Assembly: GCF_001194135.2 (NCBI RefSeq)
Contig: NC_068983.1
Location: 163,026,760-163,090,759, forward strand
Direction of reading: 5' to 3'
DNA length: 64,000 bases
DNA from: Octopus bimaculoides
Taxonomy: Eukaryota
Shown here: piece by piece, positions 7,064-54,260 of the stretch
How positions within the stretch are numbered: the first letter of the stretch is position 1
How the letters are laid out: each line of letters opens with the position of its first letter
Translations under genes and position numbers: made by a program
Notes under the pieces: model-generated
Databases searched by the model: none
What the model was told of the DNA's origin: nothing
Seen by the model: only the letters and a program-made list of their open reading frames with translations

Positions 7064-7221
7064 CAAGTACGTACACACACACACATACACACACATATAT
7101 ATTCTGTCCTTCGTTGTTTCTATGTATAGAAAACAGAATTATACATTCAATGATATCGTGGAAAGGTGTCGGGATGAATAAAAGCTCAGTGGACGCGAAC
7201 GAAAAATTATTATGTGTGCTG

Positions 7222-7257
<36 letters not shown>

Positions 7258-7274
7258 TCATCATCATGTATATA

Positions 7275-15170: not shown

Positions 15171-15322
15171 AAAAAGCAGCAAATTAAATCACAAAAACTG
15201 TTACTCAGAGTTTCACGTTCCCGTTCGTCGGACAGTTTTGTTTAAAACAAAACTGTGCAACGAACGGGATCGGGAAAATTCTGAGTAACAGTTTTTGTTA
15301 TATTTTTGCTGCTTTTCAATAA
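15166..15322. mobile_element. Palindromic fold-back of a Penelope-like pLTR with hammerhead motif
   Basis: ~73-78-bp inverted arms centred at 15244; the left arm folds as a hammerhead on the minus strand; AATAAA at ~15318. Confidence 0.7.
15194..15239 (-). ncRNA. Minimal type-I hammerhead ribozyme, CCGACGA core variant
   Basis: AAAACTGT-CCGACGA-ACGGGAACGT-GAAA-CTCTGAG-TA-ACAGTTTT: 8-bp stem I, stem II ACG/CGT, near-palindromic stem III, GUA cleavage triplet. Confidence 0.75.
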
Positions 15323-15804
15323 AGTATATTACTCTACCGCAGGTATTCGAGTACTATTTTTTCCAACTTGTTTCGCAATTATATTCATACAATTCACCAA
15401 GTTATACTGTCATTTCACCGACTACTACTCATTGTGCAACCTCCGTGTCTCAGTGTGCAACGGTGAGCTTCAGGATTACCTTTGTCTATCCACTTTCACT
15501 CGCTTTAAAAGGCTGCTGTTATTTCACTTACATTTAATGCTTCCATCAGACATCGGAGCACTGTCGATTCATATATGAGCTAAATATGATATTAAGAAGT
15601 GCTATTCATTGTATGTCCTAGCAAGTAATTATCTTTAGGGCCAATAACAGGTGGTGAAGTTTTCACAGAGGCATCGAGATGTCCCGTAAGGTATTTGTGC
15701 TAAACATTACATATCTCCTTCACATGATATTTATGAATTCCAGTCTTTGCATTTGGCTAATTCATATAGTCATAAAATCATAACACCAATTGCCTCATTT
15801 CACG

Positions 15805-22121: not shown

Positions 22122-23424
22122 GACTACAGAACATTGGATTTAGCTGAGGACATCGGACTGCATGTATTATAATTAGAACGGTTCGTTAGTCTTCTTAATT
22201 ATTCCAATTCCATTCCTCAAGGTGACCATAAAACAGCAACCAGTAATATATTGAAAGGAAAATACATTTTCTCTCCGATAATTAATTTTTCGCTTCGTCA
22301 AAAGCGATCAATATCTCAGCTATGGAAATTTCGAAAGGAAACATCACTTAAATTTGAAATATTTATATTTTAACGCATATCCACACCTTTATAAATATAC
22401 ATCAACACAAACGCACATTACTCACAAAAGCGTGTATAAAATATTTATAACAAACGTCAAAAACTGTAATTTATCAAAATCAAAATAAAATAAAAACCAA
22501 TCGATTCTATAGATTGTAATGACTAAGAGTAATATCATTTTGAATTATGATTTACAATATATACTTTCAATAGTTAATTTATCACTATTTATCTATTCAC
22601 TGGGACGTAAAAGTTCACTAATATTTTGTAAACTTTAACTCACCTCACCCAACATATATATCTGTCGATGGAAAACAAAAAAGATTTGAACGAACCACCA
22701 GAAGAATAGGTTTAAAATATTAGCAATATTTATGCTCTCTGTCAAACACATTAATTGTTTTGTCTGATACACTGTGTAATAACAATACGATAATATCTAA
22801 ATGTGCCACATAGCTTTTCATTGTACAGGTTAGAATGGTCATGTAAAAAAAATGTTGAGGGCTTCATTGTTTGTGTTGATTTCGCAGATGTTAAGCTGTA
22901 GTTAGTGTCTGAAAAGAGATGGTGACTCTTTATAGAAATAATAAAGAGAAGCCATTGTGTAAGACTGAAAAGGATGTTAAACTTATACTTACAAGAATTC
23001 GTATGCTTGGAAGGTGGAAGATCTCATTTTTCATTGATAAACATCTACATAACAATTTTTCATTGAAACGCTTATCCGAGACATATAGACAGTTGTTTTT
23101 AATGAGAAATAACTGGTCAATAAACAATGGAGTATGCATGATATCAATTACCAGTCGACCACAGTAAGAAATAAAATAAGAATCGAGCAGAAATATGTAA
23201 TAAGATGTTCACTTGACAGCTGGCGTGCTGTTACTTGCTGTGTTCCGTGTTCTAAAGATGATTCTTCCTTAATGCTTGTTGAACTGTGTGGAACTAAACC
23301 TGTTTAACGCGCTAGTACGAAGCCATTTGAATCGAAGTTTAAATACATGATATTGGAAGTCAATACATTCGTATCCTTTCACGCAGACGGGTGATATTCA
23401 GTTCCATTGTTGTGTCAACACTGA

Positions 23425-23484
23425 TTTCACTGAAGAGACAGACAATTATTGAATTGTTCATGTCGAAACCTTAAAGTATAGAAT
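23425..23484 (+). ncRNA. Type-I hammerhead ribozyme (CTGAAGA core) in a Penelope-like pLTR remnant
   Basis: CTGAAGA at 23430-23436, stem II GACA..ACAATT/AATTGT..TGTC, GAAA at 23465-68, near-palindromic stem III CCTTAAAG, GUA triplet; one mismatch each in stems I and III. Confidence 0.65.
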
Positions 23485-23564
23485 TAAATGCTATGTTTAT
23501 TTCTGTTCATTTGTCCAACTCGTAAACGTCTAGCGTCTTACTAAGCTGAGAACACAGATTTAGT

Positions 23565-23790
23565 GTGATAGTATGTTGTTAACTTAATGTGACAATCCCA
23601 TAAAAGGTAAGAATGCTACTGGTATTTAGCTCTAGGAAACACCGTTTCCTGTTGGGTTTGACACATTTCCTGTGTCCTTATGTTTTCAAAGTGGAGATAA
23701 GCACCTCCACCCAGCAAAATCAGCATCCAGAGACTAGTTTCAGAGTCATTGCTCCTCATCAGTCTAGTGTAGCATGGCTTGCTAGCTTAG
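23565..23790 (-). mobile_element. Penelope-like pseudo-LTR with hammerhead
   Basis: About 88% identical by eye to 26817-27041 in inverted orientation; contains a minimal hammerhead. Confidence 0.75.
23727..23767 (-). ncRNA. Minimal type-I hammerhead ribozyme, catalytic core intact
   Basis: CTAGA-CTGATGA-GGAGCAATGACTCT-GAAA-CTAG-TC-TCTGG: palindromic stem III (ACTAGT) and GUC triplet; predicted cut between 23732 and 23731. Confidence 0.85.
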
Positions 23791-24078
23791 CTTAATTCTT
23801 TATTACAGGCACAAGGCCTAATTACAGAGTGGACATACAAAGATATGCGCGAACAAAAAACACACGAAAGGATGAATGTGAAATGAATAAAATTACAATG
23901 CAGATGAGATGGTCATCTCGCTCCCGCTGCGAGAGGAAATCGTGGATTCCTTTTCCTAAAAACCTTTTCATTTTACATAACTACTAGCCTCGCTCCGAGG
24001 CGAAACCGTGACTTCCCTTTTCGCTTTTACTCTACAATTATAAACCTTTTAAACAGGATTTACTTATTTTCTTTTCCT
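23772..24078 (-). repeat. Terminal direct repeat, 3' copy
   Basis: Roughly 85-90% identical to 26407-26711; AATAAA near its 3' end and GCCTCG/CGAGGC hairpin. Confidence 0.93.
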
Positions 24079-24136
24079 TTTTTAAACCAAATGCTTTTCA
24101 CAGTATTTTCATCGTAACTTTTGAAAACCTGTTCAT

Positions 24137-25240
24137 TTAACGGTTGCAAAATTTACTTGTTTTGCCTTTTCTTCCCCATAAAAAGTTCAAATAAATGGTT
24201 TTCTCAGTTACAGTCTTTACAAAATTATAACGATGTCTTTCAATTTTGCAATCTTTTAAGTTGGAGTGTCCTATCTCATTATAATTTTTCTTTTTGTTTG
24301 TGTTTTTCATGTCTCTTTTTGTCTCTGTATTTCTGCTGTTTTTTGAATTCTTGTAATTGCGTCTGTATGTCTGTGTGTTCGTGTCTGTGTGTTCGTTTGA
24401 CTGTAATTCTATGTGTTTCGTCTGTGTGTCTATGTCTTTAGGTTTCCGTAATTCTGGGCTGTATTGTTTCTGGTCTGTCTTGTTTCTGGTCTGTCTTGTT
24501 TCTGGTCTGTCTTGTTTCTGGTCTGAATAACCCTGTACTTGTAAGGCCTTTACTGGTAATTCTACTGCTAAATCTTCTCCGTTTCCCGTCGTGGGTTGGG
24601 TTTCCTCTTCCTTTCCTTTACGCTTCTTCAATTCCACTGTCGTCGGTGACTTCCTTCTCTCTCTTTTCCTGGGTTTCACCTCCACAAACTTCCCGTCATG
24701 TTCTGTTTTCTGTTTCTGCGTTTTTTCTACCATTATATCTTCCTGAACATTCTCCTCTACCAGTTCCACTGCTGCTCTAGGGTATTTCCTTCTCAAGTGT
24801 CCTCTTTCACCACATCCGTAACACTTTGGGGGTCTCCCCTCCAACATTATTTCCAGTTTTTCTCCATTTGGCAATTCCAAATTTTCCGCCATTTCGTCGT
24901 AATATTTCGGGCTCACTGCATAGATTATCTCTATACCATAACTCCTCCATTTCTTTTGTTGTGTTCTGCTTATTATGCCAATCTCCACATCTTCACTTTC
25001 CTTCCTCAGCTCTGAAGTAAAAATTCTGGCTATTACCCATTCTGGGTTTATCGACGCTGGGATTCTTCCCACCCTAATCCTAACGATTGTTTTGCCCAAA
25101 CGGTTCGGCATCAGCGTCCATTTCTCTCCCTGTATCAGCCTTTCTCTCTCTAATAGTGCTGCTTTCTCGTCGCTGTGAAATAAATCTTCATCTAATTTTA
25201 CTCTTGTTAAATTTTTTACTTCTGCGATCTTTTTTTCAAT
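24137..25240 (-). pseudogene. ORF1-like unit B (RRM-like region + CCHC knuckle + charged tail)
   Basis: Open for ~365 codons from IEKKIAEVKNL; contains RIRVGRIP, WRSYGIEI and LEGRPPKCYGCGERGHLRRKYP (last knuckle Cys is Tyr). Confidence 0.8.
24465..24525. repeat. 16-bp tandem repeat (TGTTTCTGGTCTGTCT) x3.8 inside ORF unit B
   Basis: Three full units plus 13 bp. Confidence 0.95.
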
Positions 25241-26254
25241 CTATATTCTTCTTATAAATAACCATCTTTCTTATATTCTGTCCTGTCGGTTTCCTTCTAT
25301 TCCATATGTGCGTTATTTTTTCTTGTACCTTCTCCTTCCACTTTTCATATCTCTCTTTTTGATTGTTATTTGTCGACTCCGGTTCCGGGGTTCGAATTGC
25401 ACTCTCTTCCTCTTTCTCTTGTGTTTTCGCCGCCTTTCTTTTTTTTTTGTCTGCACCTTTTGGCAGTGACTCCGCACTTGTCGTTTTCTTGTTTGCCACT
25501 GTTTCTTCTACCTTCTTTTCTTCCTCCACCACTGCCATTTCCACCTCTGCCTGGTTTTTCTCCAATTCCTCCTGTTTATGGGGACACTTTTCCTGCATGT
25601 GGCCCCTACTTCTACAATTATAACATATAGGAGGTCTCCCCTCCACCACGATTCTCAATCGGGTCTCATCGAGGAACATCAGCTCCTCTACTATTTTATG
25701 CAAGTCTGGTAGGGTTATATGGACCACGACTTCTAATCCATAACCCCTCCAATTTATCTCATTAGACTTCTTCACCTTAATTCTACTTCCTTTTCACAGT
25801 TATAGAGGATGGCTGCCACTAGCCATGCCTCGTCTATTTCCGGGGGTACTTTCCCTATCCTGACTCTTGAGGTTCGTTTCCCGCAGTAAGTTTGCAAGAG
25901 TGCCCACTTGGCCGTTCTCAAAGGCACAGTGAAGTATCTTTTTGCTTCTCCGTTCACGAAACGCTCCTCCACTGTGCCGTATTTCTTCCCTCTGGCGTAA
26001 AAAGTGGTCACTTCTTTGACTTCCCGCATACATTCTTCGATGGCTTCAATTTCTGCCACTTCCACACGTTTGGTTTGAACGTTCAATGTGCGATACACAA
26101 TAATTTTCTTCTCGGCTTCTTGCAGACATTCGACAGGTGGCGTCAACCGGAGCCAATTCCCTTCCTTTCTAAACAGTTCATTAAACTTCTTAAAGTCATT
26201 GTCTTCCAACGTTACTTCTTTGCCTGCCACCGCAGCGTAACTGCCAGCTTCCAT
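25236..26254 (-). pseudogene. ORF1-like unit A (frameshift near 25780)
   Basis: ATG at 26254 (MEAGSYAAVA); RVRIGKVPPEI, WRGYGLEV and VEGRPPICYNCRSRGHMQEKCP with an intact CX2CX4HX4C. Confidence 0.82.
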
Positions 26255-26406
26255 ATCTTCACCCAAAAATGGGGAAGAAGGAAACGAATTCAACAGCAAC
26301 AAACAATTCTCAAATTTCCAAAAAATAACAGTTTAAAAAAAATCCAAAGTACAACACTCACCGCTCGCAATCAACAACGCTATCGCCAATCTAAATCAAC
26401 AAAAGG

Positions 26407-26711
26407 GCGTGGCTTGCTAGCTTGATTCTTTATTACAGGCACAAGGCCTAATTACAGAGGGGACATACAAAGATATGCGCGAACAAAAAACACACGAAAG
26501 GATGAAAGTGAAATGAATAAATTACAATGCAGATGAGACGGCCATCTCGTTCCCGCTGCGAGATGAAACCGTGGATTCCTTTTCCTTAAACCTTTACATA
26601 ACTTCTAGCCTCGCTTCGAGGCGAAACCACGACTTCCCTTTTCGCTTCAACCCCACAATTATAAACCCTTTAAACAAATCTTCATACAGGATTTACTTGT
26701 TTTCTTTTCCT
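26407..26711 (-). repeat. Terminal direct repeat, 5' copy
   Basis: Homologous to 23772-24078. Confidence 0.93.
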
Positions 26712-26816
26712 GAAGGGAAGACTGTTACTGTTTAGCAATATATTATTTCTATTTTCAAAAATCAGTGAATGTATTTCACTCGAAATATATATGTTTTCAA
26801 AGGTGGATAAGCATCG

Positions 26817-27041
26817 ACAGCTATCAAGACATGCTACTCCAGACTGATGATGAGCAATGACTCTTAAACTAGTCTCTGGATGTTGGTTTTGCTAGGTGGA
26901 GGTGCTTATCTTCACTTTCAAAACTTAAGGACACAGAAAATGTGTCAAGTCCAACAGAAACAGTGTTTCCTAGGGCTAAATAACAGTAGCATTCTTCCCT
27001 TTCATGGGACTGTCACATTAAGTTGTCAAACATACCATCAC
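26817..27041 (+). mobile_element. Penelope-like pseudo-LTR with mutated hammerhead
   Basis: CCAGA-CTGATGA-TGAGCAATGACTCT-TAAA-CTAG-TC-TCTGG at 26839-26879 (G12 to U); a short inverted piece of the same pLTR lies at 26792-26816. Confidence 0.75.
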
Positions 27042-27810
27042 TTTATCGTGCTGCTACTGCATAAATCTCTGAGAGATTTAGAAATATATTATTACAGATT
27101 TAGTGGTAAGACGGTTTGACGTCTATTTGTAGCATAAAAGAGATCCACATAGTGATCTCTCATATTGTTTATATTAAAATAATTAAGCGTTAGCAATAAA
27201 AGAATATCATAAACCGTAGAGCTTTTGATACCATAAAGGGTTCCGTTTCCTCTCTTCTATTTCTGTGTTTTAACTCATATGAAGGTCGGTGCAGTTTCAT
27301 AGAATGGCTTGTGCACCCCCCCACAAACACACAAACACACATACAAGCAGTCACACGGGTGTACCCACACGACCACACACACACACACACACACATCCAC
27401 ACACGCGCGCGCACACATATACATACACACACACACACATGCAAGCATGGATACACACAGACCAAGTCTCAGACAAACTCAGAGCAGGCCTTGTAAACCT
27501 TGAGCGAGAGGCAAAGTCGCTTGTATCACTGGAAATGTCGCGAATAACGATGAAAGAACATTGGTTAGCAAACAACCGATTGATTGTTTAAACCAGCTCA
27601 TAAAACAAACACTCGATTAATTAGTTGGTAGGATATTTAACCAACTGACTAACAGTAAAGACGTGGAATTGAACCAGTGCGTGTGTTATTATTATTGTTG
27701 ACGTAATGACTCTCCCAAGATGCAACAAAAAAGTACCAAATACTTGTCAGTTTAGTTCACCATATATAACTCTTGAAATATCTGACTTGGGTTTAACTCA
27801 AAAACCAAAT

Positions 27811-28390
27811 ATTCTTTTTTACTCTAGGCACAAGGCCCGAAATTTTTTTTGGGCGGTGGGGAGGAGGGGGGGGAGTCGATTGGTACTTATTTTATCAACC
27901 CCGACAGGATGAAAGGCAAAGTCGACCTCGGCGAAATTTGANNNNNNNNNNNNNNNNNNNNNNNNNNNNNNNNNNNNNNNNNNNNNNNNNNNNNNNNNNN
28001 NNNNNNNNNNNNNNNNNNNNNNNNNNNNNNNNNNNNNNNNNNNNNNNNNNNNNNNNNNNNNNNNNNNNNNNNNNNNNNNNNNNNNNNNNNNNNNNNNNNN
28101 NNNNNNNNNNNNNNNNNNNNNNNNNNNNNNNNNNNNNNNNNNNNNNNNNNNNNNNNNNNNNNNNNNNNNNNNNNNNNNNNNNNNNNNNNNNNNNNNNNNN
28201 NNNNNNNNNNNNNNNNNNNNNNNNNNNNNNNNNNNNNNNNNNNNNNNNNNNNNGTACATATTTTATCGACTCCGAAAGAATGAGAAACAAAGTCGACCTC
28301 GGCGGAATTTGAACTCAGAACGTCACAGCAGACGAAATACCGCTAAGCATTTCGCCCGGCGTGCTAAGGTTTCTGCCAGCTCGCTGCCTT
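27811..28390 (-). mobile_element. SINE family B, split by a gap (possibly two copies)
   Basis: Tail at 27811-27941 and head at 28254-28390 flank the N-run 27942-28253. Confidence 0.8.
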
Positions 28391-28480
28391 CAAAAACCAA
28401 ATATTAAACAATATTGTGGAGATTAGAAAATTACTATTTGTAAATATCACAACATGAGACATTCAGCAACAGTACTTTGG

Positions 28481-28724
28481 AGTAAAGATTGTTTACCAAC
28501 ATAACATGGCAGTCCTGGTTTAGGACTAATGTTGCTGTAATTTAGCCCCAGGAGACATCGTTTCCAGCTGGCTATACGACACGATCTCTGTTCCCTTGTT
28601 TGAAAATATAAGGACACAGATCGTGTCGTATAGTCAGCTGGAGACGATGTCTCCTGGGGCTAAATTACAGCAACATTAGTCCTAAACCAGGACTGCAATG
28701 TTATGTTGGCAAACAACCTTTACT
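28481..28724. mobile_element. ~244-bp fold-back built from a Penelope-like pLTR 3' segment
   Basis: ~115-bp arms with a few mismatches; the right arm TTTGAAAATATAAGGACACAG..CCTGGGGCTAAAT aligns with the pLTR at 26920-26990. Confidence 0.75.
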
Positions 28725-30199
28725 ACAATATTGTGGAGAGTCGCACACTTTTGACAACGAGCTGTGACGGGGATTCACAAATGCAACTGTTGATTACGTG
28801 GCTGAACTATGATATTAACAATGGATGGATAACAGACTCGTTGCAATAGAGTAATTTTAAGTGTCATACAGAGAGCAAGAAAATGATTTATTCGTTTTCT
28901 TTATCGTTCATCCCATGACAAGGTGTTAAATTTATTGCATAGGAGAGCTGCTATCAGTTTTCGCTGTGTTAAACTGACCGATAAAATATTATGGTCTGCA
29001 AACTATTGTTATAATTGTTACGAGAATTAAGGTAATGTTTCGAGAGGGAAGCCATTTGGGAAAAAACAATGCGATCGTTCCCTAAACAAAAATATCTAAA
29101 TTTACGCAATATAATATGGCTTCCAATCATTTTTATGAATAGTATCTAATTGAAGAAAATAAGTAAAAAAATTCCTTGCAGTGTAATTCTAGAATATTCC
29201 AGAATATGGAAGAAAATTATCTTAAGAAAAACAGTGAATTAAAGGTATTCTGTTAATATGCAGAGAGACGAAATATTCCACAATAACTGAACTCCAGAAA
29301 TATGATATTAACTTCGATACAATGTTATTGTTAAAATTGTTGAGTTTATGGCCAGGGATATACAGTTTGAGGTAAGTTACTGGGAATCAACACTGTGATC
29401 CATGAAGTGGCATCAATTTATTCACTGAGGTTGTTTTTCATTCGTATTCATGCTATATTCTCCAGAAAATTCCTGAAATTCACACCGCTTAATTTCATTT
29501 TCCTTACAGCGCAACGCAATTCTGTCGAGCCAAAATAATGCCTTTATATCAGCTGTATTGGTCTGAGAGTTGCAGAAAAGGTGTAATAACTTGTCCCAAA
29601 CGCTTCTACCTGATGTAAAAGAAAGTAAAATATTAAATGTAGCAGAACAATGGAGCAATGTTAGAATGTCATAATAACTTTATATTTTACTCAGATTTGA
29701 TTTCGAGAATATTTCGCAGGTTTTCTCGGCAAGAAACAAATAACAAGCAACGTAGAGATTCCATCTTTCGTTAAATGCCCTTTAACTTGGCAGATTGATA
29801 CATACACACATACATAATACATACATACATACATACATACATACATACACACACACACGTATATCCCCAGACACTTGTCTCAAAGAATATACGCGTAAAT
29901 CCACAAATTGGGTATCATTAAGAAACCGTGTTACAATATAGGGATTCACGGATTGACAGAAGTGTTATGGATGAATCCTCAGGGTCCATACCTGTCATAT
30001 CTGCAGGGCTCTCCCTGATTCTTGAGTACGGTTGAGTTTGCGTTACTTTTCAAAAACTTTAGATCAACATCTGACGAATAAGCACAGGCGGCGGGAAGGG
30101 GAAGGCAGTGTTGGGGAAGAAGGTTTGAATTGAATACATGATTAATTAGCGTGTGCGTGGGTGGGGGTAAAGAACATAGAGTGAGTGAGAGAGGGAGAG

Positions 30200-46475: not shown

Positions 46476-47162
46476 CAGAGTGCGATGGGTAAATTGTTGC
46501 CATTTTATATTTATAATTTCGCGCATGCGCGTTGTTTGTTTTTTATTTTGTCGACCACACAGTATAGTAGGGTCAGTTGGGCACCGTCTGTGAGAAAAAC
46601 CTCACGATGATGCAATTCCAATGCAAAAATTTCAGAGTGTTTGGGTGTCAATTTGAGGACAGTACAATTTGAGGACACGTACCGAGTGTGATAAAAATCA
46701 AACATCCAGTCAACATCATGGTGTTTGGAGTGAATACTAGTGATGGCAATGTTATGCCTCCATTCATTTTCCCACTCAACACGGAGGCCTACATCAAGTG
46801 CATGATGGAGGTAGTATTGTCCTGGGTCAAGAGGGTGGCTGCTGGAAGACTCTATGTCTGGCAACAGGACTCTGCACCATGCCACACAAGCAAGAGAACC
46901 CAGTCATGGCTGTCGGATAATTTCTGCGGCCACATAACCCTTAACATCTGGACACCTAACTCTCAAGACTGCAAAGCCCTTGATTATTATGTGTGGGGCG
47001 CAGTTGAGCGAGAGACCAACAAAACTCCTTGTAACACCAAAGATGAACTGAAGGCGTGGATTATGGCAGCACTCACCAACTTATACAAGGAGACCGTCAA
47101 GATGAGTTGCAGGAGATTCCGAAGTCGTCTGGAGGCCGTGGTTGAGGCCAATGGCGATTTTA
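46476..47162 (+). mobile_element. Internally deleted maT (DD37D) transposon; 3' end lost in a gap
   Basis: TA|CAGAGTGCGATGGGTAAATT terminus; open frame 46688-47161 with MVFG, WQQDSAPCH and WTPNSQDCKALDYYVW (37 residues D to D). Confidence 0.88.
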
Positions 47163-50879: not shown

Positions 50880-51130
50880 AAATCTCTTGTCCACCGAGAA
50901 TAGGTGTGAAGGCTTGTGGACCAGACACTCTGATCTCACCGATGGCCACCACTTCCAGATCTAATGATCTAAGATCGTTGTGTGATAGTGGCCCTGATTC
51001 CAAGCTGATTCCAGGTCACGTGCATTAACACTGCCTTTTCTGAGGGCAAGCATGATCGACAAGAGAGAAATTGGTGAGTAAGAACCACTTGCTTTACTTT
51101 GCCTGTCTTCTTTTTGGGGGACATGAAATA
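50880..51130 (-). mobile_element. CR1/L2-type LINE RT fragment, internally deleted
   Basis: VPQKEDRQSKASGSYSPISLLSI (P..K....NYRPISLLS motif) followed by an AFD.VWHQG-like segment. Confidence 0.6.
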
Positions 51131-53728: not shown

Positions 53729-54260
53729 ATAATTTTAGGAGAGTTTCTGTTTATGCCCCAACTAGATTAATTTCTTTAAACGTTTAAAAATATTCTTGAG
53801 AATGTGATTTGCTCTTTAGTGTTAGTAAACTACCCTAAGAATTTTATTGTTACATGCAATATTTGGTCATTACTACCTTAGCAACAACTGTCTTCAACAA
53901 GTGGTAGCAGACTGGAAGCATTCCCAATCTTATGAACCGTAGAGTGGTGGCGTTGTCAAGGAAGAATCTGATCAAAAAGAAGAGACAGTAAGCAACTTCA
54001 GACTGATAAACCTGCTAAGTACAGAGTTGAAGATTTTGGTAACAATGTTCACAAGCAGAATGGTGCTTCCTGACGGTAACCAGAGATGTGCAATGTTGTT
54101 TGATTCTCGGCAGAGCTATCCACAGAAAAAGTTATTTAATGCGATACATCAAGGAGTTGTCGGCCGGGAATATATCTAGTTGCAGTTGACCTTTAATCAA
54201 CTTCGATCAATTTAATTCCTTAAACATGCATAGCGGTCTGTGATGATCTAAACTCTTCTC
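53440..54260 (+). mobile_element. Decayed, internally deleted L1/Tx1-type ORF2 (APE + RT fragments)
   Basis: FRRVSVYAP (endonuclease), VSNFRLINLLSTELKIL, GRAIH..YLMRYI and LINFDQ (RT). Confidence 0.75.

Follow-up and report, generated by a model that had tools for sequence, protein, structure and literature searches.

The HeT-A element of Drosophila, a telomeric member of the Jockey clade, is a gag-only retrotransposon without long terminal repeats (non-LTR) that obtains its reverse transcriptase (RT) in trans and lies head to tail, with the 3' end of the upstream copy preceding the next copy and serving as a promoter. HAL1 of mammals is a non-autonomous derivative of the L1 group, consisting of open reading frame (ORF) 1 and untranslated regions (UTRs) without ORF2, and forms a family rather than a single deletion (PMC5753468). 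The Tx1 clade, also of the L1 group, contains long interspersed nuclear elements (LINEs) with an APE-type endonuclease which favour defined sites, including sites in other transposons; these include Tx1L in Tx1D, Keno in U2 genes, Kibi and Koshi in microsatellites, and the crocodilian Tx1-Mar in Mariner-N4 (PMC4494074). Here we describe a retroelement of Octopus bimaculoides lying in a stretch of 64,000 nucleotides (contig NC_068983.1, positions 163,026,760 to 163,090,759; hereafter the window), which a preliminary description had characterised as an ORF1-only element with long terminal direct repeats. We propose, with a probability of roughly three in four, that the locus records two successive head-to-tail insertions, at the same site, of a non-autonomous L1/Tx1-group LINE family which targets a hammerhead-bearing repeat, T.

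The octopus family resembles HAL1 in consisting of ORF1 with UTRs at several loci, but its ORF1 has RRM-like domains and a CCHC knuckle where that of HAL1 has a coiled-coil-RRM-CTD arrangement, and the two lineages are independent, the octopus one belonging to Octopoda. The octopus element also lacks a poly(A) tail, ending instead in a hairpin, AAUAAA and a short tail, and is strongly associated with one target repeat. With the Tx1-clade LINEs it shares a liking for a defined site in another repeat, and the ORF2 of its relatives comprises APE, RT and zf-RVT domains; it differs from them in having no ORF2, and its membership of the clade is tentative. The analogy with HeT-A that had been drawn earlier holds as far as gag-only content and head-to-tail arrangement are concerned but no further, as the octopus tandem comprises a single truncated copy, the three relatives stand alone, there is no sign of a chromosome end, and neither a telomeric role nor a 3' promoter is indicated.

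An ORF1-only LINE family in octopods

Two direct repeats (23772-24078 and 26407-26711; 305/307 bp) are 85.3% identical over 319 columns (blastn, E 1e-104), with two indels of 12 and 8 nt between them, and enclose 2.3 kb of minus-strand zinc-knuckle coding sequence; blastn found no further copy within the 64-kb window. Read on the minus strand, both begin AGGAAAAG and terminate ...CCTGTAATAAAGAAT(T/C)AAGCT(AAGCT)AGCAAGCCA, the end also reading ...GGCCTTGTGCCTGTAATAAAGAAT(T/C)AAGCT...AGCAAGCCA. Neither has TG..CA ends, ARAGORN detected no tRNA-like sequence or tRNA-complementary primer-binding site (PBS) at them, and no target site duplication (TSD) was seen outside the pair in the window. The repeats themselves, their lack of TG..CA ends and adjacent PBS, and a zinc-knuckle body devoid of RT and endonuclease had all been reported in the preliminary description and are borne out here: tblastn with two ORF2 proteins of related LINEs found no RT or endonuclease within 25 kb of the element, and there is none among the ORFs of at least 150 aa.

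A single-sequence, word-indexed protein search with the window ORFs returned only three matches, all from O. bimaculoides, and exact look-ups of window ORFs A and C and of proteins P0001-P0003 and P0009 led to no contig; a profile built from the octopus homologues together with the window ORFs recovered 686 relatives among 1.84 billion representatives, and the wider ORF1 family is present in O. sinensis, O. vulgaris and Argonauta hians. No RT or endonuclease was fused to ORF1 among the long relatives scanned. Relatives on long contigs, reached by a word-indexed search with an alignment of ORF1 homologues, reveal what stands next to the ORF. In L001 (ENA ERZ21867824 ctg117343l) a 643-aa ORF1 is followed after a 6 bp gap by a 1158-aa ORF2 with Exo_endo_phos (APE), RVT_1 and a weak zf-RVT domain; in L002 (O. 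vulgaris OX597840.1:31862384-31883409) a 503-aa ORF1 precedes a 1132-aa ORF2 with APE, RVT_1 and zf-RVT, whose best PDB match is human L1 ORF2p (E 2e-71); and L003 (O. sinensis) retains ORF1 and remnants of ORF2. Since ORF1 homologues directly precede an ORF2 with APE and RT, the window 'gag' is evidently the ORF1 of an L1/Tx1-group LINE, with two RRM-like domains and a CCHC knuckle, as the L1/Tx1-related origin first suggested would have it. Pfam recognises only zf-CCHC in this ORF1, and tandem-RRM proteins are matched by the AF2 model for its nearest homologue in octopus (pLDDT 77, with about 90 in core residues). A search with the L001 RT domain returned ENA proteins only, from which no clade name was obtained.

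The direct repeat could also be assigned. In three O. vulgaris loci (L004, L005 and L006) the region 3' of ORF1 is 71-77% identical to the window repeat by blastn, the upstream repeat giving the same range against their 3' UTRs. The conserved 3' UTR block TCTCGCAGCGGGAGCGAGATGGCCGTCTCAT stands first in the order TCTCGCAGCGGGAGCGAGATGGCCGTCTCAT...GGCCTTGTGCC..AATAAA. Just 5' of AAUAAA, the window, L004 and the ORF2-bearing L001-L003 have a hairpin of 3-4 bp with an invariant CUUGU loop, the stem being GGC/GCC in the window, L004 and L001, CCC/GGG in L002 and GCC/GGC in L003. Pairing across these sequences is 95.8%, compared to 29-54% with slid partners, two pairs are changed on both sides, and 5 of 500 shuffles attained the observed percentage paired and covariation score. 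Judged on this conservation, octopods have a LINE family of L1/Tx1 type whose 3' UTR is the direct repeat, as its AATAAA and short terminal repeats had suggested at the outset, and the hairpin, common to ORF2-bearing and ORF2-less elements, is probably an RT recognition structure. The further question whether the repeat is the 3' UTR of an autonomous Tx1 element is answered positively for the hairpin, which L001-L003 share, and not for the 3' UTR as a whole, no autonomous partner with the same 3' UTR having been seen.

Lack of ORF2 is a trait of the family, because L004-L006 also run from ORF1 straight into the 3' UTR, at a distance of about 150-500 bp. These loci are the closest available relatives of part of the window element (module C, below; 38-43% amino acid and 65-78% nucleotide identity). 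L004 has an open ORF1 of 389 aa, L005 an ORF1 of 257 aa with a decayed tail and L006 an ORF1-homologous region, and none of the three shows ORF2 homology by tblastn. With the window, this makes four independent copies of the structure 5'UTR-ORF1-3'UTR, three of them from one other species, in a sample of octopus genomes that was reached via annotated ORF1 proteins. The absence of an own ORF2 implies a non-autonomous derivative rather than a member of an autonomous LINE family, and the notion of an ORF1-only family, raised in the preliminary description, is thereby upheld. The long terminal direct repeats that it counted as a property of the element are not: in L004-L006 the repeat occurs downstream of ORF1 only, without an upstream copy, so the 'terminal repeat' of the window is best explained by one upstream 5'-truncated insertion. 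Of the repeat-ORF1-repeat structure without ORF2 that the description proposed to look for at other loci, the lack of ORF2 therefore recurs in L004-L006 and the pairing of repeats does not; the alternative of a neighbouring truncated insertion, which the description itself had named, holds for the terminal-repeat half of its claim.

Within the window, the upstream repeat (DR5, 26419..26711, minus strand) is a 5'-truncated LINE copy of which only the final ~293 nt of the 3' UTR are present, with the hairpin GGC-CUUGU-GCC at 26448-26438 and AATAAA at 26434-26429. The second copy begins with a T/G-rich 5' UTR (26255..26404, minus) and continues into an ORF1 designated AB (25236..26254, minus), which has two RRM-like domains and a CCHC knuckle: an ORF at 26302-25772 and another at 25775-25236, both on the minus strand, form one gag-like ORF split by a single frameshift near 25775-25780. 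Its knuckle (CX2CX4HX4C, 25628-25587) is intact, and it is 50% identical to O. bimaculoides A0A0L8HDN2. Directly at the stop codon of AB, and without an intervening 3' UTR, starts module C (24137..25240, minus; open frame 25111-24137), a 5'-truncated ORF1 of a subfamily other than that of AB, which begins near residue 88-112 of full-length relatives and is nearest to P0013, P0016 and A0A0L8HJ83 (38-47%); its knuckle (24826-24785) is degenerate, the last Cys being lost. In the low-complexity tail of module C a 16-nt unit, TTCTGGTCTGTCTTGT when read on the plus strand, stands five times in tandem (24436-24531). The 3' UTR of copy 2 follows (23788..24136, minus), its last ~290 nt (24078-23788) constituting the downstream direct repeat (DR3), with the hairpin at 23818-23808 and AATAAA at 23804-23799, and it ends ...GAATTAAGCTA on the minus strand. 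The body thus reads as a chimera, not recognised in the preliminary description, of a full but frameshifted ORF1 of one subfamily and a 5'-truncated ORF1 of another; the fusion may have arisen by a template switch in reverse transcription or by a later deletion. The window copy is probably dead, given the frameshift, the broken knuckle, and direct repeats and inverted arms that have diverged by 12-15%.

Head-to-tail arrangement is also common in this LINE group, as its ORF2-bearing members show. L001 and L002 hold arrays in which copies are 96-100% identical and some are 5'-truncated, abutting the 3' end of the upstream copy. L002 4446-19300 comprises three full-length copies, mostly 98-100% identical, with a period of ~5280 bp, and in the first of these ORF1 (503 aa) and ORF2 (1132 aa) are open, so that it looks recently active. 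A hammerhead split over the L002 tandem junction (CTGATAAGGACG...) was considered and dropped when no helices were found. L001 1-14122 represents an abundant related LINE in head-to-tail arrays, with hundreds of ORF2 fragments on different contigs at 66-98% identity to the query, and its 3' end has AGGCCTTGTGCCT...AATAAAG in common with the octopus repeat. In L003 the ORF2-bearing element ends ...GCCCTTGTGGCCAATAAAAAGAATTA, followed by (ATT)n (15312-15375), which suggests a microsatellite target for that subfamily.

The window is an inner part of a gapped scaffold, with 15 runs of N, many microsatellites and 15-41% G+C. In tblastn, an O. vulgaris LINE ORF2 is weakly matched in its RT and APE parts at 53859-54225 (plus strand, E 1e-6) and 50884-50979 (minus strand, E 3e-3); these matches probably belong to a separate, decayed LINE unrelated to the element. 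An ORF at 46688-47160 (plus strand), read by eye, resembles the C-terminal part of a Tc1/mariner-type transposase and runs into an N gap, and at 27883-28312 an N run (27942-28253) between 59-bp direct repeats of 85% identity resembles a collapsed or unresolved repeat.

The target repeat and its hammerhead motif

The whole structure is enclosed by inverted repeats of 223 bp (23565-23787 and 26819-27041; 88% identical), which, like the hammerhead in them and the fixed insertion site, were not noticed in the preliminary description. The final 13 nt of the direct repeat are shared with the left arm, and these 13 nt also form the end of the upstream direct repeat. The right arm, together with a 107-bp 'spacer', makes up a complete monomer of T (26731..27100, plus strand) whose insertion site is empty, and the left arm corresponds to the downstream part of a second T in the orientation of the element (23550..23787, minus), homologous to T copies in L005 and L006. 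A T monomer measures ~347 nt, with a 17-nt terminal redundancy TTTAGnAATATATTATT. Since L005 and L006 have the two parts of T in reverse order (IR'->S), with contiguity crossing the unit boundary, T appears to be a tandem-type unit; no long T array was seen in the window, L005 or L006. Inverted dimers of T adjoin the element in the window, L005 and L006. A reading of the locus as a terminal inverted repeat (TIR) DNA transposon with the ORF as cargo, and with a 12-nt match CACTAAATCTGT shared by the two outer ends as TSD, was rejected because T has an internal palindrome (AAATCTCTGAGAGATTT) and forms inverted dimers elsewhere. In L006 one such dimer (7192-7261) has its junction ~10 nt 5' of the hammerhead cleavage site described below. 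A near-perfect palindrome of 252 bp (89.7%) at 28477-28728 is 72-74% related to the middle of T; a weak Rfam match to 'mir-5595' there reflects only the palindrome.

At all four loci (window, L004-L006) the element lies a few bases 5' of a hammerhead motif in T, in the same orientation; such a preference for a defined target is a trait of the Tx1 clade, and the sample is small. In L006 a 20-bp TSD, AGCAAGCCA(T/G)GCTACTCCAG, surrounds a 5'UTR-ORF1-3'UTR unit ending ...AATAAAGAGAAA and extends as far as the hammerhead core region, ending at its first base, and in L004 an 11-bp TSD, TGCTGGGTTCG, is followed by the hammerhead. L005 retains a 5' junction (...GCCATGCTACTC); its 3' junction is deleted and the T tail follows. 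In the window the 3' end of the element is followed by AGCTAGCAAGCCATGCTAC... of T, and the first ~13-19 nt of this downstream T (23787-23769) repeat a remnant of target T of TSD size, AGCTAGCAAGCCACGCCC, which separates the end of copy 1 from the 5' UTR of copy 2 (26405..26422, minus; repeated part 26422-26405), consistent with a TSD. Expressed by junction, the 5' UTR is separated from the truncated copy upstream by AGCTAGCAAGCCA(CGCCC), and AGCTAGCAAGCCA(+) occurs at both junctions, indicating a TSD of ~13-18 bp. Uninterrupted T copies, representing empty sites, occur at 26731-27100 of the window and in L005. From locus to locus the 3' nick falls at different positions and the TSD varies in length, and the insertions are therefore independent of one another. 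Variable-length TSDs, together with the truncated DR5 and the truncated ORF1 of module C, bear the signature of target-primed reverse transcription (TPRT).

Metazoan hammerheads typically have a helix I of 6 bp, a helix II of 4 bp and a helix III of 1-2 bp with a palindromic loop, and have been found in Penelope-like elements (PLEs), throughout metazoan genomes and, in some cases, paired on opposite strands (PMC4209133). The motif in T downstream of copy 2 (23726..23768, minus strand) is composed, from 23768 to 23726, of ACUAGA, CUGAUGA, GGAG-CAAUGA-CUCU, GAAA, CUAG and UC^UCUGGA, with cleavage predicted between 23732 and 23731. Judged by sequence, it has the type-I core (C3 U4 G5 A6 N7 G8 A9 ... 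G12 A13 A14, with predicted cleavage after H17) and helices I (5-6 bp), II (4 bp) and III (1 bp, capped by a palindromic CUAG loop). A strict hammerhead descriptor matched once in the window and in none of 3000 shuffles, while the loose core CTGATGA...GAAA gave three overlapping matches against 2.5 expected, which is not significant.

An alignment of six copies, to which the window and L006 contribute two each and L004 and L005 one each, has 88.9% of cells paired compared to 32-47% with slid partners. Four pairs are changed on both sides, a count attained by 2 of 500 shuffles, and these include a change from C-G to U-A in helix I and the core change from C3-G8 to U3-A8, the latter variant being that of L004. 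The same core covariation has already been described for PLE hammerheads (PMC4209133). Some copies are damaged: the right T monomer of the window has a degenerate hammerhead (26838..26880, plus strand) with G12 changed to U and 10.1/11.1 unpaired, and one L006 copy has U4 changed to G.

Alternative explanations

T taken alone resembles the units of PLEs and non-LTR retrozymes in its type-I hammerhead, its tandem-type unit of a few hundred nucleotides and its nearby opposite copies (PMC4209133; PMC8557442; bioRxiv 10.64898/2026.07.22.740005); animal non-LTR retrozymes are tandem units of ~170-400 nt, each with a type-I hammerhead, that form circular RNA, compared to ~347 nt for T, which was seen in no long array. 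T and the ORF1 module might then form one composite unit moved by a PLE-type RT, with the direct repeats as pseudo-LTRs (pLTRs) and the upstream inverted T as the usual inverted 5'-truncated copy. PLE insertions do typically form partial tandems (pLTRs), have hammerheads close to the 3' end and stand next to an inverted 5'-truncated copy, and one PLE of Chara has an upstream gag-like zf-CCHC ORF (PMC8557442); in the window, L005 and L006 the element has an inverted T on its upstream side, and the hammerhead is always directly 3' of the element. However, the hammerhead lies outside the direct repeat, in T, which serves as target rather than belonging to the ORF1 element; DR5 is separated from the 5' UTR by no more than 13-18 nt of T; the TSDs of 20 and 11 bp lie inside T, tight around the 5'UTR-ORF1-3'UTR unit; the ORF1 and 3' hairpin are common to LINEs with APE and RT, not PLEs; and neither a PLE RT nor a GIY-YIG domain was seen near T or in any of the loci. 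The Penelope-like architecture suggested by the inverted repeats and hammerhead was dropped on the strength of the TSDs inside T and of the uninterrupted T copies, and we regard it as improbable. We consider it more improbable still that an autonomous LINE lost its ORF2 locally, in a single event, beside an unrelated truncated copy. It is true that related subfamilies (L001-L003) carry ORF2 and that the window copy is clearly rearranged, two ORF1 modules being fused with no 3' UTR between them, but ORF2 is likewise missing from the three closest relatives in O. vulgaris, which occupy separate chromosomal positions and differ in their TSDs, and the ORF1 of L004 is open over 389 aa.

Domestication of a LINE ORF1 as a host gene for a zinc-knuckle RNA-binding protein, with the repeats being incidental, would account for the several octopus homologues that are annotated as proteins and for gene models in which ORF1-like parts are fused to WD40 or LDLa domains. 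It is hard to reconcile with a frameshifted copy whose second module is truncated and whose knuckle is broken, with LINE UTRs and TSD-like junctions, or with a multi-copy family of diverged paralogues, and we give it very little credence. (The gene models in question, P0022 of 1041 aa with WD40 and P0055 of 547 aa with LDL-receptor class A repeats, contain an ORF1-like segment and may be exonised LINE fragments or annotation chimeras.) A non-autonomous LTR-type element of TRIM- or LARD-like kind, with the 305-bp repeats as its LTRs, was the 'LTR-like derivative' of the preliminary description, and two direct repeats of similar length enclosing a coding body do give that impression. The hallmarks of such elements (TG..CA ends, a tRNA-complementary PBS, a TSD outside the pair) are absent, the repeats finish in a LINE 3' hairpin and AATAAA, relatives L004-L006 have the repeat at the 3' end alone with TSDs flanking a single unit, and the gag-like ORF is a LINE ORF1; this alternative is barely tenable and we abandon it.

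Several observations weigh against the proposal of two successive insertions of a T-targeting LINE family. The Rfam hammerhead models gave no match on 23700-23800 (101 nt) even at E<=10, and neither the whole window at gathering thresholds nor 23000-29000 yielded a hammerhead or any other credible Rfam family, the weak miRNA-like matches being palindromes or microsatellites; position 10.1/11.1 of helix II is unpaired in three of the six hammerhead copies. The window TSD is imperfect beyond 13 nt, and the sense left half of T that would be expected upstream of copy 1 is absent, its place being taken by antisense T and a stretch of 19 nt of unexplained origin (26712..26730, minus). The ORF2-bearing relatives examined do not sit in T, and no LINE that could be an autonomous partner, sharing either this 3' UTR or this target, was seen. 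Only four ORF2-less loci are available, and their 4/4 association with T could be partly due to ascertainment, since they were found through annotated ORF1 proteins. Finally, the LINE clade could be Tx1 or L1 proper.

Proposed history and implications

Under the proposed history of two same-site insertions, the element would enter T by TPRT, in the orientation of the ribozyme and a few bases to its 5' side, duplicating 11-20 bp of T. Copy 1 would have been inserted in 5'-truncated form, its ~293 nt of 3' UTR being the upstream 'repeat', and copy 2, with its chimeric ORF1 and 3' UTR, would have landed in the regenerated site, so that 18 nt of T remain between the copies and the remainder of T, including the hammerhead, lies downstream. 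A second T monomer of opposite orientation upstream would account for the flanking inverted repeats. As the TSD restores the target downstream, a second strike gives the order copy-TSD-copy-TSD-T and hence the LTR-like look of the window; in Tx1-type LINEs generally, repeated strikes on one site would be expected to give head-to-tail copies. In its active state the element would presumably have been transcribed from the 5' UTR, with the ORF1 protein probably binding its own RNA, and ORF2 protein may have been supplied in trans by an autonomous relative which recognised the 3' hairpin and carried out TPRT into T.

It is tempting to go further and suppose that the ORF2-less family homes to the base of the hammerhead because the ribozyme of the target serves it. 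A transcript reading through the element would then be cleaved ~55 nt beyond AAUAAA, giving a defined 3' end with a T-derived tail, and this tail could pair with nicked T DNA and prime reverse transcription. Such ribozyme-assisted, RNA-guided homing would, if true, explain a target preference that exists without an own endonuclease and is not shared by the ORF2-bearing relatives seen, but we put it forward tentatively and think it unlikely.

The kind of element described here is known; its ribozyme-bearing target repeat is new. We know of no report of a hammerhead-bearing repeat as the target of a LINE, and found no paper linking hammerheads with octopus repeats in the literature searched. For annotation, the lesson of the locus is that repeated strikes at one target site can mimic LTRs. 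An independent ORF1-only family in octopods shows that non-autonomy has been reached in this way more than once, here in a LINE lineage that is very different and has an ORF1 of the RRM-like and CCHC type. If the 4/4 association holds genome-wide, it would link a LINE lineage to hammerhead-bearing repeats, which have hitherto been tied to Penelope-like elements and retrozymes, and would offer a tractable case for asking whether the ribozyme of a target shapes the RNA ends of the retrotransposon that inserts there.

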